NCBI GenBank assembly: GCA_033442325.1
Contig: JAWQFM010000022.1
Location: 248,001-312,000, forward strand
Direction: 5' to 3'
Length of the DNA: 64,000 bases
Origin: Salpingoeca rosetta
Taxonomy: Eukaryota > Protista > Choanoflagellata
In this document: positions 54,355 to 61,144 of the stretch, piece after piece
Layout: each line of letters opens with the position of its first letter
Position numbering within the stretch: position 1 is the stretch's first letter
Made by a program: the position numbers and the translations under genes
The notes under the pieces: model-generated
Database searches by the model: none
The model's input: only the letters and a program-made list of their open reading frames with translations
Told to the model about the DNA's origin: nothing

Positions 54355-54804
54355 TGTGTTTGTGTTACCGCCGCCTCGTTTGTTTGCTTGAGTGATGTGA
54401 CATGATGATAATGGGAACTCTCCTACTGTCTGTACTTGTCTGTACTGTAGTACTGTTTGACCTGTTTGTTGGTAGCGCCATCAGTCGGCCTTGCGGCTGC
54501 CGCGCCCCCGAGTGACTACCGTCACCCTGTCCTCCTGCTGTCGATTCAGTGGAGAGTAAACAACTCCAGTAGTGAGAGGAACCGATTTGGTGGAGGGGGG
54601 GGGGGACCAAGAACCGAGGAGACCCGACTCACCCTGCAAGAGACACCGCTGAGGCTGTTGCTCAAAAGAGAAAGGACCCGCGTACACGTCCAACCTGTGG
54701 AAGGAGGCTCCGGCCGATTTGTGTTGGATATTTTCATTCAATTTTCCTCCTCCAACACCAAACACAAACAAACAACAAGCAAGCCACCAGCACGATCAGC
54801 CAGA

Positions 54805-55002
54805 ATGCCTCGTTCCAGCAGTTCCAGTGGTGATGGTCGGGATGGGTTTCAGGAATCAACCGCAAGTGAGAATGGTGCTGTTGACGAGCGTGCCAAGTTG
54901 ATCATCGATGCGATTGCGTCCAAGGACATGCGCCCTCTCGAAGCAACGTGCGAATCTGCCCTGTGTTTTGCGTGGGGTGTGGGTGGGTGGATGTGTTTTG
55001 CG

Positions 55003-55073
<71 letters not shown>

Positions 55074-55177
55074 NNNNNNNNNNNNNNNNNNNNNNNNNNN
55101 NNNNNNNNNNNNNNNNNNNNNNNNNNNNNNNNNNNNNNNNNNNNNNNNNNNNNNNNNNNNNNNNNNNNNNNNNTACG

Positions 55178-55256
<79 letters not shown>

Positions 55257-55491
55257 GTGCACCCTGTGATTGCGTGTGCTTGGGTGTCCGTGTGCTGGTG
55301 GTGGAGTTTCTTGAGATCGACTTTGCCAGTTCTCTCCACCCAACAACACACATGTCACACCGCCTCTTTCTTTCACTTGCTTGCTTTTGTCGCATGTGTT
55401 AGGCTTGACAACATGCACCTGGGAGAACACGGCTCCCAACTCCTCGCGGACGCACTTCAAAACAACACTTCGCTTGAATGCCTTTCGTGAG

Positions 55492-55580
<89 letters not shown>

Positions 55581-56475
55581 ACGGGCGCAAGGTGGAAGAG
55601 GGCTTTCCCGTGCAGTCGCATTGATGTTCGAAAGGTCCACGTTGCACTTGTCACTGGCATTTTGGTGCTTCCCATTTCTCGTTTCGCCGCTCTCTTAGCC
55701 GCTGCCAGAGAGCTGACACCACAGAACACACCAACCATGAATGCTTAGACTCCGGAATTGTGGCATCGGTGCCATTGGTGCCTGCTACATTGCAAGTGCC
55801 CTCAAGGACCACCCTTCACTCAGCCAACTCAAGTAGGGATGAACTGAGTGAGAAAGAGAGAGAGTGTGTGTGTGTGTGTGTGCTTTGTGTTTTGTGCTCT
55901 GTGCTCTGTGCTCTGTGAGAGAGTGAGAGACAGAATGTGCTTGTGACTGAGTGTATGTGTGTGTGTGCGTATCTGCGCTTGCTTGCTTGCGCTGTGGTGT
56001 GCACGTGCGTCTGCAACCTGCTTGCAGTGCGGGCGTGAGCAGACGGCACACGTGCTCCCTGTTTTGATCCATGTTGATCACCTCAGCTCAAACATGTGCT
56101 CCTGTGTGGTTTCCAGGCTATGTGGGAACGACATCCGAGATGAGGGCGTCGACTACCTGGCGCGTCATTTGAAGCAGAACAAACGCCTGAAGCACCTTGA
56201 GTAAGCTTGGAGCGAAGGGGGGGGGGGACAGGCATGTGATGATTGTCGTGCACGACATTTTCGGCTGTTGACCTGTTGACAGCACCGTGCTCATCTTACA
56301 CGTGGTCATGATCGCGTGTTTTGCTTGGTCTGATGTTCATTGGCTTTCTTCTTTCAGCCTGAACAACAACCCCATGACTGAGCAGGGCGCACATTCGCTG
56401 CTCCTCCTAGCCAACGCTCGCAGACTCACCACGCTTGGGTGGGTTGTCGTGCCTTGGGCGCTCGTGGCCAGGTTC

Positions 56476-56529
<54 letters not shown>

Positions 56530-59244
56530 TGTGGGGGGTGGGATCTGTAAATGTGCTTGTGCGCTGCGCCTGTGCGTGTGTGCTCGCCAGTGTGATTGAA
56601 TGTGTCTGTAGTTCGTGTCTGTGCTCGCACACTGTGACGTGAGCAGTGTGTTCAGCTGACAGCCTCAAATGTCGTGACATGCTTTCCGACCGAACATGGC
56701 AGGCTGGCACGCTGCGGCCCAGACGTCGCACGTGTCCTGGGGAACGGATTGCCTTCGGATATCACCACCACAATCCACTGGTGCGTGTGCCCTGCCTGTC
56801 TGATTGTATCTGTGTATATGTGCCTGCGCCTGCCTGCCTACCTCTCGGTGTGGCACTGCGTGTGCGTGTTGTCTTGTCCGTTTCATTTTTCCTGCGTCGC
56901 CACAGCCGCATTGCATCTACTCGCTGTTCCAACTTTGTGTTTCAGGTTCCCTGTTCTGTCTGCATGGGTGATCTACGCGAGCGTATGCTCGCAACAAACA
57001 CACCTCTGCCATTCTCTCCTGCTCCAACGTCATGCTGTGCCTGCAGGGAACCACTGAAGCAGCGCATCTATGAGAGTTTGCGGCCAGTGCAGCGAGGCGA
57101 GCAGTCACCTTCCGCTGCAGACCAGGCGCAGCGCAACTTTGACGAGCAGCTCAGAGATGAGGTCAAGCGCTGGCAGCGCAAGCAAGGGAGGCCAGTGGGT
57201 GCTGACCACCAGCAACCAGAGCCTTCCAAGAAGCCACGACCACCTGTTCCGCCAAAACCAGCAAAACAACCGCGCCAACCAGCACCAACACCAGTGCCGC
57301 CACGGCGGCAATCACCCTCACACCAAGACCCCCATGACAACGACAGCAGCAATAGCAACGGCAACAGCAGCGTTCACGCTTCATCCTCCGCCGAAGAGCA
57401 AAAACGTCTGCAGGAGCGTGTACGTGCGCTGGAGAAGAGGGAGGAGGAGCTGGTGCGACGGGAGCAGGCACTGAAGGCGAAGCAGCAGCAACTCGACCAA
57501 CGCGCCCGCAAGGAAGGTGCGTGTGTATGTGTCTGACTGCGTGTACGTGTTCGTGTGCGCGTGTTGCTTGTGCCTCTGTGCGCGAATTTGTGCCTGGATG
57601 TGTGCATGTGCACTGACGCACATCGCACTGCTCTGAATATTTTTTTCTTTGTTCCCTCACTTCCCTTCTTGTTTCACGTTCTTGTGCTTGGTTTATTTGC
57701 TCACAGGCGAGCTGTTGCGACAGCTGGAGGATCATACAGGTTGGCTGTTTCTCGTGCATGTCACTGCCTCGAGTGTGGATGAAATCATCCCTCGTTGCGC
57801 ACTGCGGCAGTGCATCTGCTCTTACACCCCCGTGTCTCTGCTCGCGCGTTGACCCACATGCGCAACCTATCACATGTGCCTTGTGCACATGCACATACAC
57901 ACATACGCACAGACACACATGCACGCTTTCGTGCCTGCACCTTCATGCAAACCCGCATCAATCATACACACGCACGCTCACGCACGCGCCTTGCGCTTGC
58001 ACATGCACCCTGCTCAGAGTACCTGCTTCGTCTGAATATCCCGTATGAGCAGCTAACGGAGAAGAAAGTGGCAAAGGATGCGCGCGGAAACGTTGTGCAT
58101 GTCCGCAGCGGTGACCTGTACTCGGCCGTGTTCGACGGCAACCGCGTTGCGCTCAAAGAGTTTCGCCACATTGACAGGCGCCCACGCTGGTCTCATCTCC
58201 TGCGCCATGGCAGCAACCGCTCCATTGACGATGTGATTGAGAATGATGGTGACAGCAATGGAAGCGGTAGTTTCTGCATCAAACGTGACAGCACCGGCGC
58301 TGTGATCACGCCCGACATGCGCTCACTGTACCGGGAGGCGCTGATCCTGGCATCCCTGCGCCACTCAAACATTGTGCAGTTTCTCGGGCTCTGCTACGAG
58401 GAGCACACCAAGCACCTGTACTTTGTGCTGTCGTGGGCAGACAACGGCTCTCTGTGCGAGTACATGCACGTGAAGAAGAAGCCACTCGACGACACACACA
58501 GGCGGCGCATCTTGAGCGAGGTGGCGGGTGCCATCAGCTTCTTGCACATGCACAGGGTGGTGCACCGAGACATCAAGTCCCCCAACGTTCTGCTGGACAG
58601 CTTCCTCTCTGCAAAGCTGACGGACTTTGGCGAAAGCACCTTCAAGGCCAAAGACAAGACCGACGTCACACATGCTGCGGGCACGCCAACGTGGGCATCC
58701 CCTGAGCAGCTCTTGGGCGCACCCGCGCACCACCCAGGAGACGGCGGCAGTGGCATCGGCACCCTGCGTGCAGTCACAGACGTGTTCTCGTTTGGCTGCC
58801 TGGTGTGGGAGGTGTGGTTTGGCGTCAAGCCGTGGCACCACGGCAAGTACGCGCCGCACGGTGCGTCGGTGGCGGAGATCGCTGGCAGCTACAGTCGCGG
58901 CGAGTATCTTCCTCTTGACGAGAGCATCAATGGGCGAATGTTACCAGACCACCTCCGGGCTGTCCTGCGCTGCTGCTTCACCGATTCAAGCGTCCGCATC
59001 GCCTCCCCCATGGTGCACGCCATGCTCAAGACCCAGTACGAGATGGACAAGCAGAAGCGGGAGGACTTGCTGCATGGACCTTCCGACGCCATGTGGAAGT
59101 TTCCCCTGGCGCTTCGGCAGACGCTCAGTGCCACGCAGCTGACCACACGCGCCACTGTCAACATTGCCTTGCTGTCCCTGGACAACCACCTTGACCAAGT
59201 CACAAAGGTCCGTGTCTGGATGCGTGAGCGCGTGCGCGTTATGT

Positions 59245-59315
<71 letters not shown>

Positions 59316-60423
59316 GTTGTGTGTGTGTGTGCGTGTGTTGTGTATGCGTGCGGATGGGTTGTGCAGCTGCTGCCACTGCTGCGGCGACTGCCACTGCTGC
59401 TGCTTTGGTTGTTGATACATTCTCATTTCCTTGCTTTTCTCAACCCCCTTCTTGGTTCTCGTGTATTCCCATGTCCATGTGCCCCTGCCCGCCTCTGTGC
59501 CTACATCACAGCTGCTGCATCAGGCAGGGGGTCGCACGGCCCAGGAACGTGATCCGTTGAACCCCTTCGGCCATCGCCTCGCTCGCGTCGCCATCACGTG
59601 GGACGAGCAGAAGCTTGCTGCGTTCAACAGTGCCATCCACCGCAACGATTGCCGCTACCGCGGGCACCTGTCCAACATGAGCCATGCGTTTGCACCCCGC
59701 TATGCCTTCGATCCAAACACGAAACACGTGCTCGACGACGAAGAACGGGCTGTGCTGCACCGCGTGACCATGCCGGGCGTCTACAGCATGCTTGAGCCCC
59801 ACCGCGCACAGCGCAGTCCTTTCCTGCGCATTCAGCGTGTGTTCCACGGCGTGAGGGACCTGGGTGCCATCACGGGCATCCTAGGCGGTGACTTTGCGCG
59901 TTTGCAGAAGACAGATCCTGGCTGGTTTGGCGCAGGCGTGTATTTCACGCCAGACCTCGACTATGCACTCGCGTACACGCAAGCGTGCTCGTTGACGGGC
60001 AACAACAGCGGCGTGTCCGACAAAGACGAGCCTGGCCTGTCCAATTTTGTTGCCGGCCTCAAATTGGCGCCTGACAAGCTGCACCGTGTTGTGCTGGCAT
60101 GCGACGTGCAGTATGGCAACCCGTACCCAGTCACCCACGACTCGTTCCACCCAGCCGTTGAGGCGACCGCGTTTCCGACGCCACCAGCAACCCCGACGTC
60201 TCGGGAGGAGCAGCCGCCGCCGTGGAAGTCGTTTGGCGGCCGCCCGCTCATTGGCGGCCACGACGCACACGTGGCCGTGGTCAACTTTTCCAGCGGTGAT
60301 GTCGAGCACGCGACGCCGTTCCTGAGCCACGCCGAGTGGGGCAAGGGGGCTGCGGTGTCGGAGATTGTCGTTGATGAACCGCAGTGCATGCTTGTTCGAG
60401 CCATTCTGGTGTTTGAGGCGTGA
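54805..60423 (+). CDS. Cytosolic RI-type LRR + Pro-rich/coiled-coil + TKL kinase + PARP-like ADP-ribosyltransferase fusion, about 1052 aa, 10 exons
   Basis: Exons 54805-54947, 55403-55486, 55749-55832, 56117-56200, 56358-56438, 56703-56780, 57047-57516, 57707-57739, 58018-59207 and 59512-60423 are phase-consistent. LRRs include 'LGEHGSQLLADALQNNTSLECL' and 'NDIRDEGVDYLARHLKQNKRLKHL'. Kinase motifs: VALK, HRDIKSPN, DFG, GTPTWASPE. ART motifs: 'RVFHG', 'TDPGWFGAGVYFT..YALAY', 'SEIVV'. Confidence 0.85.
55074..55173. other. Assembly gap (100 N) inside a (TG)n intronic tract
   Basis: Run of N flanked by GT repeats in intron 1 of the LRR-kinase-PARP gene. Confidence 0.99.
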
Positions 60424-61144
60424 GAAGTTGAGAGGTTTTGGGATCAAGGTTGAAAAGTGCGGAATGAGAGAGAGAGAGCGCGCGCGCGTGCGCTGGAGAG
60501 GCGTGTTGTTACACCTTTGCGTTTGAGGGATGCGGCGTTACACCGCAAGTGATGTCACATGCCACTTGACTATACCGTTTGCTTTGCGGGCCATGCCATG
60601 TTTGACACCACTGTTTTCATGTTTCTGAGTAGTAAGCGGGTTGCTTCCTGAAACACGTCACCTGACTCGCTGAAATGAAAGACGCGCAAATGGCAATGGC
60701 AGTGCAACGCATGACACATGACGCATGGCACGTGACAATCTGAGCAATGACATGACACGACACTTGTGGCCCTTTTGGGCGATGGGAGGGCGTGTCGCAA
60801 ATTTGCGACAATGAATTTTGTCACGTCTTGCACAGTCATCAAGGTTGAATTTGTGCACAGTCACGAAGTGAACAGTCACGCGTGTGAATAATCTCCAAAT
60901 CGATGCACGCACCGTCGCAGGTGTCATTTTCACAAGCGCCAGTCAGTTCCAACCAGACACGGAATTAATCTCTTGTTCGTGGGAGAAACACCCCAGAGTG
61001 CTTGCAGTTATTACCGTGTGAGCAGGATACTTGGATACCAGTGTGCCTTTGTCTTTGTTTCGCAAGTACTGGCATCTCGAACGCGGTCCAGAGTACTTTG
61101 AGCGAAAGGACTGAAGCGTCACTCACAACGGAAGCAGCGGCATC

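Follow-up and report, generated by a model that had tools for sequence, protein, structure and literature searches.

A Salpingoeca rosetta gene encoding leucine-rich repeats, a TKL-like kinase domain and a divergent PARP-type ADP-ribosyltransferase domain in a single transcript

Several described protein classes share parts with the product of a gene found at positions 54805-60423 of a 64,000-nucleotide stretch of Salpingoeca rosetta DNA (assembly GCA_033442325.1, contig JAWQFM010000022.1, positions 248,001 to 312,000; hereafter the window). The predicted protein, of 1052 residues, carries leucine-rich repeats (LRRs), a linker, a tyrosine-kinase-like (TKL) kinase domain and a C-terminal ADP-ribosyltransferase (ART) domain of the PARP type. 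The Kinase TLRs and the TIR class of choanoflagellates (Richter 2018, PMC6040629) are likewise restricted to this group and likewise have, within a single polypeptide, a kinase paired directly with LRRs and/or an effector-type domain that uses NAD+, and for such kinase-LRR/TIR fusions a part in streamlined signalling, triggered by bacteria or other cues, has been proposed (PMC6040629). However, the Kinase TLRs contain a transmembrane segment with the LRRs outside the cell, and TIR is the last domain in both TIR-fusion classes, whereas the 1052-residue protein has no transmembrane segment, LRRs of the cytosolic ribonuclease-inhibitor (RI) type and a PARP-type ART at its end. ROCO/LRRK proteins (LRRK2, Dictyostelium Roco) are also cytosolic multidomain proteins with LRRs and a TKL-group kinase, but the protein described here lacks the Roc GTPase and COR, and ROCO kinases lack an ART.

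NOD-like receptors (NLRs; NOD2, NLRP) and ribonuclease inhibitor present the same 28-residue RI-type LRR (E 1e-24 to 1e-12), encoded in modular, phase-compatible repeat exons. In contrast to NLRs, the S. rosetta protein has no NACHT, CARD, PYD or Death domain, has about five repeats and carries an enzymatic effector consisting of kinase plus ART. Its kinase domain is best matched by Raf-like/MLK TKL kinases (CTR1, RAF1, MAP3K12/DLK, TNNI3K), in which the K, E, HRD, N and DFG residues are likewise intact; it differs from them in a degenerate glycine-rich loop, an insert of about 27 residues and the identity of the flanking domains. The C-terminal domain has the predicted fold of PARP/ARTD enzymes (PARP10, PARP15, tankyrase 1/2, PARP4), with F-H-G, G-x-Y-F and E-I-V-V where their H-Y-E triad lies, but it scores below the Pfam cut-off for PF00644, has about 140 added residues and is fused to the C-terminal side of a kinase.

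In the open-access literature searched, no paper describing an LRR-kinase-PARP architecture was found, in line with an earlier note on this DNA, made from the sequence alone, which knew of no characterised protein of this kind. PARP-family surveys (PMC2964712, PMC4245714) mention no kinase-fused PARP, and the S. rosetta genome paper, the choanoflagellate kinase paper and the survey of choanoflagellate innate immunity (PMC6040629) make no mention of PARP or ADP-ribosylation. The gene and its protein are already public and the domains are known; it is the expanded architecture, with its divergent PARP subfamily, that is undescribed.

Splice-site enumeration over 54500-60800 yielded a ten-exon gene on the plus strand, with all introns GT..AG, all exons in phase and a spliced open reading frame (ORF) of 3159 nucleotides whose sole stop is terminal ( Table 1 ). 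The 1052-residue translation is an exact match to a database protein of S. rosetta (P0010; XP_004991232.1 / EGD76860.1 / UniProt F2UIB1), publicly named only "serine/threonine protein kinase" and annotated at NCBI without an ART domain. Transcription was assessed by comparing 54700-60600 (5,901 letters) with four public sequencing runs, comprising RNA and probable DNA. Two RNA contigs from different studies, X5 (3465 nucleotides) and X7 (3406 nucleotides), extend from the 5' untranslated region (UTR; starting at 54772 and 54752, respectively) to beyond 60600, with exon blocks equal to those of the gene model. Seven joints are explicit in the comparison of both contigs, and the joints 55486/55749 and 55832/56117 were read from the contiguous record coordinates of RNA contig pieces. 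The joint between the kinase and ART exons, 59207/59512, is covered by both RNA contigs and by seven raw stranded reads with six distinct starts, the orientation of the raw reads (first mate on minus) being consistent with a plus-strand mRNA in a standard stranded library. These data confirm that LRRs, kinase and ART are encoded by a single transcribed gene and reside in one mRNA. The ten phase-consistent exons of the earlier note thus stand, with all nine junctions seen in two RNA contigs and in stranded raw reads, and the RNA check that it had proposed across 59207-59512 and the LRR exons places both regions in one mRNA and rules out separate kinase and ART genes.

A model of this kind could also arise if neighbouring LRR-kinase and PARP-like genes had been merged, or if coding sequence had been lost in a run of N. 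An assembly gap does lie within the locus, and the paralog PTSG_08612 is annotated as a stand-alone 367-residue PARP protein that starts at the ART exon. Against such an artefact stand the two independent RNA contigs, which cover every junction between the 5' UTR and the 3' UTR, the raw stranded reads over 59207/59512 (7) and 54947/55403 (3), a Microstomoeca transcript with kinase and ART within one ORF, and the presence of a kinase exon just upstream at the PTSG_08612 locus. The joint 54947/55403, which spans the gap without added letters, is found in X5, X7 and the three raw reads; since transcripts join 54947 straight to 55403, no exon of the dominant transcript is hidden in the gap. The merger of two genes is therefore rejected on the RNA evidence, and the chance that either kind of artefact accounts for the gene is practically negligible.

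The public model of PTSG_08612 (P0001; locus L001, C26:509163-518526), a "PARP catalytic domain" protein, starts exactly at the ART exon and is probably truncated, because a kinase exon and the conserved 'MID' linker adjoin it upstream on the same strand. As to the gap in the locus studied here, (TG)n arrays of 28-52 copies, all in one orientation, occur in introns 1, 2, 5 and 9 (55006-55073, 55180-55253, 55496-55579, 56478-56533 and 59242-59343), and it was one of these arrays that caused the assembly gap. Contigs of the probable DNA run X1 retain the introns and break at every (TG)n array, as short-read DNA contigs do, and none of them bridges the gap. Also, X1 has an extra G after 56216 relative to the window (single contig, depth 19.5), in a G-run of intron 4; this is a homopolymer-length difference with no coding effect.

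The C-terminal domain, encoded by the last exon, has a genuine though divergent PARP-type ART fold, that is, a diphtheria-toxin-like fold with an H-Y-E triad. At the sequence level, a profile made from ten homologues retrieved only PARP4 from PDB, and a 42-member profile retrieved 57 matches, each to a PARP catalytic domain or to exotoxin A, with PARP13 as the best (2.3e-5), followed by PARP4, 10, 12, 15, 16, 14, TNKS1/2 and exotoxin A. In these alignments the family motif 'vfHG' falls on the triad-histidine position of PARP13, and 'GaGlYfT' falls on 'GKGIYFA' of PARP13 and 'GSGIYFS' of PARP4, i.e. on G-x-G-I-Y-F. The structural comparison of the last exon with PARPs, which the earlier note had suggested, was performed with AlphaFold; the single sequence gave a predicted local distance difference test (pLDDT) score of 32, and an alignment of 42 sequences gave a usable AF2 model (pLDDT 92.3, predicted template modelling score 0.90). 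A VIA structural scan of 48,161 chains returned PARP catalytic domains as the top 17 matches (Z 11.0-14.4, 150-174 aligned residues), including PARP10, 15, 13, RCD1, TNKS2, PARP3, TNKS1, PARP4, SRO1, PARP1, TASOR, PARP2 and PARP16, with the next match at Z 7.8 and diphtheria-toxin-type ARTs at Z 5-6.4. The top 50 Foldseek matches are all PARPs (E 2.5e-6, probability 1.0), and ESM-Atlas searches by features and by shape both return PARP clusters.

All three triad residues that had been proposed for this domain are present, and H-Y-E is retained in 38 of the 42 family members and in 20 of the 22 scored genomic copies. His861 and Tyr893 occupy homologous PARP triad positions, and each is kept in at least 90% of the 42 members. 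Their spacing of 32 residues resembles the His-to-Tyr spacing of PARP10. In the model, Glu1033 belongs to the S-E-I-V-V of the penultimate strand (E281-287 in domain numbering), and it is kept in 38 of the 42 members; the VIA alignments extend across the C-terminal strands of PARPs. Given its E-I-V-V motif, its strand and its conservation, Glu1033 is the putative catalytic glutamate. H-Y-E does not by itself tell a mono- from a poly-ADP-ribose product; PARP3 and PARP4 have H-Y-E yet are mono-transferases.

Exon 9 encodes a TKL-like Ser/Thr kinase domain. The Pfam Pkinase family matches the full protein with 118.6 bits (E 4e-34, cut-off 31.7) and exon 9 with E 7e-35, and the closest kinases in PDB are the TKL-group enzymes CTR1, TNNI3K, RAF (RAF1) and MAP3K12/DLK (E 3e-22 to 2e-16). 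The intact VALK, HRD and DFG motifs that had been noted earlier were all found, the complete set of catalytic residues being K399 (VALK), E459, H535-R-D537, N542 and D555-F-G; the nuance to be added is a degenerate glycine-rich loop. The K/E/HRD/N/DFG set is retained in 16 of the 18 paralog kinase exons.

Enzymatic activity can thus be predicted for both domains, and it can be argued that both enzymes are used, because the catalytic centres of kinase and ART alike have been retained in paralogs that are otherwise no more than 40-55% identical. Several observations weigh against this. The glycine-rich loop of the kinase reads V-R-S-G-D-L-Y where paralogs have G-x-F-G-x-L-Y/F, the first glycine being lost and one kept, and about 27 residues are inserted in the N-lobe after strand beta3, ahead of helix C and the HRD motif; due to these two features kinase activity is not assured and could be weakened. 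For the ART, Pfam PARP (PF00644) scores 15.4 bits against a cut-off of 26.7, with paralogs at 17-20 bits, which makes the domain a distant member of the family, and the mapping of Glu1033 derives from motif, strand position and conservation rather than from a residue-level structural alignment. Also, inactive pseudo-PARPs account for several of the best structural matches, namely PARP13 (Z 13.6), RCD1 (13.5), SRO1 (12.4) and TASOR (12.3). The ART could accordingly be a silent domain comparable to PARP13/ZAP, RCD1/SRO or TASOR, serving as a docking, NAD+/ADP-ribose-sensing or regulatory module in what would functionally be an LRR-kinase. The ranking of PARP13 as top PDB sequence match and the approximately 140 of 303 domain residues that are family-specific additions outside the aligned PARP core agree with this explanation, as does the Pfam score. 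However, H-Y-E, G-x-Y-F and G-H-D are near invariant in 42 diverged members and in the 40-55%-identical paralogs, unlike the situation in known pseudo-PARPs, and this near invariance points to selection for catalysis. A silent ART is for this reason considered quite unlikely, and a catalytic ART next to a predicted kinase is the reading retained here.

The LRR region (residues 49-185) consists of four regular repeats of 27-28 residues and a degenerate fifth, with one repeat per exon and a common phase in exons 2-6. On the full protein LRR_6 reaches 30 bits (Pfam, cut-off 23.4); isolated LRR exons gave almost no Pfam matches, the full-length protein being needed. In PDB the region is closest to a ribonuclease-inhibitor-like protein (1.8e-24), NOD2 (4.9e-23) and RNH1 (4.6e-22), and NLRP14/5, LRRC34, RanGAP, CARMIL and axonemal LRR proteins are found as well. 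The repeats are thereby confirmed as RI-type LRRs, about five in number, from sequence matches, and their earlier assignment to the NLR class agrees with the NOD2 match. PF27087 appears in the precomputed Pfam list for LRR-bearing family members, including P0010 and the kinase-less P0019 (see below), and not for LRR-less ones.

The linker (residues 186-353) is rich in Q, R, P and E, with a charged helix of heptad-like pattern, about 55 residues long, at its end. Weak coiled-coil family matches occur at the linker position of paralogs, and a complex prediction with two copies of the charged helix (residues 296-356) scored 0.12 against a mark of 0.32, which is evidence neither way. The 1052-residue protein has no transmembrane-like segment (maximum Kyte-Doolittle 19-mer value 1.39) and no signal-like N-terminus, its N-terminus being hydrophilic, in agreement with the absence of both noted before; it is predicted to be cytosolic. 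Three further identities were rejected. An NLR is not supported, as the full protein has no NTPase match in Pfam and a low-complexity linker lies between LRRs and kinase. A receptor kinase or TLR is not supported either, with no transmembrane segment and no TIR match, and a ROCO kinase is discarded as P0010 has no Roc-COR, this unit occurring only in the kinase-less paralog P0019.

Table 1. Positions in the window of the features of the LRR-kinase-ART gene.
Feature	Positions	Strand	Content	Evidence
5' UTR, minimum extent	54752-54804	+	no ATG in the stretch upstream of 54805	RNA contigs X7 and X5 begin at 54752 and 54772
Exon 1	54805-54947	+	start codon, hydrophilic N-terminus, residues 1-48	gene model and RNA junction
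Assembly gap	55074-55173	.	100 N within intron 1, perfect (TG)n array on each side	
Exon 2	55403-55486	+	84 nucleotides, one LRR	gene model and RNA contigs
Exon 3	55749-55832	+	84 nucleotides, one LRR	gene model and RNA contigs
Exon 4	56117-56200	+	84 nucleotides, one LRR	gene model and RNA contigs
Exon 5	56358-56438	+	81 nucleotides, one LRR	gene model and RNA contigs
Exon 6	56703-56780	+	78 nucleotides, one LRR	gene model and RNA contigs
Exon 7	57047-57516	+	linker; with exon 8, residues 186-353	RNA junctions
Exon 8	57707-57739	+	linker, end of residues 186-353	RNA junctions
Exon 9	58018-59207	+	TKL-like kinase domain and conserved 'MID' linker (residues 701-749), residues 353-749 in all	
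Kinase K399 codon	58155-58157	+	predicted catalytic residue	sequence
Kinase HRD-Asp537 codon	58569-58571	+	predicted catalytic residue	sequence
Kinase DFG-Asp555 codon	58623-58625	+	predicted catalytic residue	sequence
Intron 9	59208-59511	+	304 nucleotides, (TG)n array inside; separates kinase and ART exons	
Exon 10	59512-60423	+	PARP-type ART domain, residues 750-1052, and stop codon	
ART His861 codon	59845-59847	+	triad residue, motif FHG	
ART Tyr893 codon	59941-59943	+	triad residue, motif GVYFT	
ART Glu1033 codon	60361-60363	+	putative triad residue, motif SEIVV	
3' UTR	60424-60600 and beyond	+	runs on to the end of the compared stretch	RNA contigs and reads

In order to place the gene in its family, the 55.4-Mb S. 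rosetta assembly was searched with an ART profile, copies with E ≤ 1e-52 being counted as strong. The genome holds 23 strong ART copies, each in one uninterrupted exon and partly clustered (contigs C4, C11, C21, C23 and C26), in addition to 14 weak PARP-like matches. Of the 23, 18 are immediately preceded on their own strand by a paralogous kinase exon, usually together with a conserved 'MID' linker, indicating that kinase, intron and ART form a fixed two-exon cassette. Three architectures predominate among the annotated paralogs, namely LRR-linker-kinase-ART, linker-kinase-ART and, in Microstomoeca roanoka, ankyrin-(kinase)-ART. As far as sources are named, S. rosetta and Microstomoeca are the only ones with the tight family, which is also found in marine metagenome fragments. 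Remoter kinase-PARP fusions occur in Didymoeca costata, Paulinella chromatophora (SidE_PDE-kinase-PARP) and Apiculatamorpha (WD40-kinase-ART).

The 1052-residue protein has no close paralog, the best showing 48% identity over 767 residues. Identity to paralogs amounts to 29-54% in the ART, 32-48% in the kinase and 28-32% in the N-terminal LRR region, and the linker, with no detectable sequence similarity to paralog linkers, can not be aligned. The number of LRRs shifts in older paralog pairs (P0011 and P0170, for example, differ by 166 residues). Older pairs show an excess of LRR divergence and the most recent pair, P0155/P0171, shows none, a comparison that is not a selection test. Taken together, the gene belongs to a lineage-restricted family of about 23 ART copies in S. 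rosetta, of which it is an old and diverged member; the N-terminal repeats vary within the family (LRR, ankyrin or none).

Some members depart from the common pattern. L016 (C4:1055563-1056378) and L021 (C4:1057394-1058161) are ART exons in tandem, separated by about 1 kb on one strand and lacking an upstream kinase exon, and the first of them, L016, has Asp in place of the triad Glu. In tblastn alignments a frame change interrupts the kinase exons of L007 (C4:1108366-1117738) and L009 (C23:783227-792527), and D-L-A replaces DFG in L009; both may be pseudogenes or reflect assembly indels. Transcripts of Paulinella chromatophora (P0032 / P0156, 1267 residues) join a SidE-type phosphodiesterase (104 bits) to a kinase and a PARP domain; P0032 is a distant relative retrieved with the family profile and, unlike the 1052-residue protein, passes the PF00644 cut-off, at 34 bits. 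The pairing of a SidE phosphodiesterase with an ART resembles the Legionella SidE phosphoribosyl-ubiquitination machinery, but here it comes from a eukaryotic transcriptome and has a kinase in between.

One kinase-less paralog, P0019 (PTSG_11903, 1728 residues), contains LRR_6 (61.8 bits), Roc (63), COR-A (62) and an H-Y-E ART at 1298-1556. Between COR-A and the ART there is a TIR_2 match of 25.8 bits, below its cut-off of 28; a phmmer search of the putative TIR region against PDB gave no match, so that it remains a weak Pfam match. The architecture of P0019 is ROCO/NLR-like, and the two domains at its end would putatively use NAD+.

The composition of the family bears on whether the protein has an immune role. 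If it acted as an innate-immune or conflict sensor-effector, the role put forward in the earlier note, its LRRs would recognise a molecule of microbial or viral origin, the kinase would be switched on through oligomerisation, and the ART, as defence effector, would ADP-ribosylate invader or host targets or consume NAD+, in functional analogy to NLR or TIR systems. Such a role is suggested by the lineage-specific expansion to about 23 partly clustered copies, by fast-evolving N-terminal repeats that are swappable in kind (LRR/ankyrin) and number over a conserved enzymatic core, by the LRRs of NOD2/NLRP class and by P0019, which joins the same ART to LRR-Roc-COR and a weak TIR match. Also, choanoflagellates are without canonical NLRs but have LRR/kinase/TIR fusions of their own that have been proposed to sense bacteria (PMC6040629). 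However, no NACHT or NB-ARC NTPase is found in the 1052-residue protein (Pfam, E ≤ 0.01), the TIR of P0019 is below the Pfam cut-off with no PDB sequence match, and the closest recent paralog pair lacks the excess LRR divergence seen in older ones. RI-type LRRs are no pointer to immunity by themselves, since RanGAP, CARMIL and axonemal proteins share the class and are equally typical of it, and kinase family expansion is common in choanoflagellates for non-immune signalling (PMC4054682). A family with variable N-termini and a ROCO-like member fits a sensor/effector family and also ordinary signalling. A conflict or immune-type role is possible, but as a specific account of this protein it is given a minor share of the probability. 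The broader proposal that the LRR/ankyrin-kinase-ART family and P0019 constitute an independently evolved, choanoflagellate-specific cytosolic pattern-recognition system, an analogue of NLRs in which sensing by the repeats would switch on a kinase and an NAD+-dependent ADP-ribosylating effector, is held just as tentatively.

The reading favoured here is the more general one, in which one expressed gene specifies a cytosolic LRR-linker-kinase-ART protein that probably couples sensing, phosphorylation and ADP-ribosylation; its activity, the coupling of its domains and its input are what we infer. In the proposed mechanism the LRR module would bind a protein or ligand partner, and this input would control the kinase, probably in the manner of other TKL kinases, by dimerisation or by autophosphorylation. 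With NAD+ as substrate, the ART would ADP-ribosylate its own polypeptide and/or recruited targets, such that a single polypeptide could write two modifications on one input.

About 20 S. rosetta genes annotated simply as kinases carry a PARP-type ART that standard Pfam screens miss, and for this reason it escaped the surveys devoted to PARP evolution and to immune-like genes in choanoflagellates. As the sister group of animals, choanoflagellates serve in reconstructions of how animal signalling and immunity arose. With a fixed kinase-ART cassette, phosphorylation and ADP-ribosylation would be physically linked within a single polypeptide. Because S. rosetta can be grown in culture and manipulated genetically, the hypothesis is directly testable. 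If the family is a sensor-effector system, it would represent a new and independent solution to cytosolic sensing, built from parts that are also found in animals and plants, namely RI-type LRRs and NAD+-consuming effectors.

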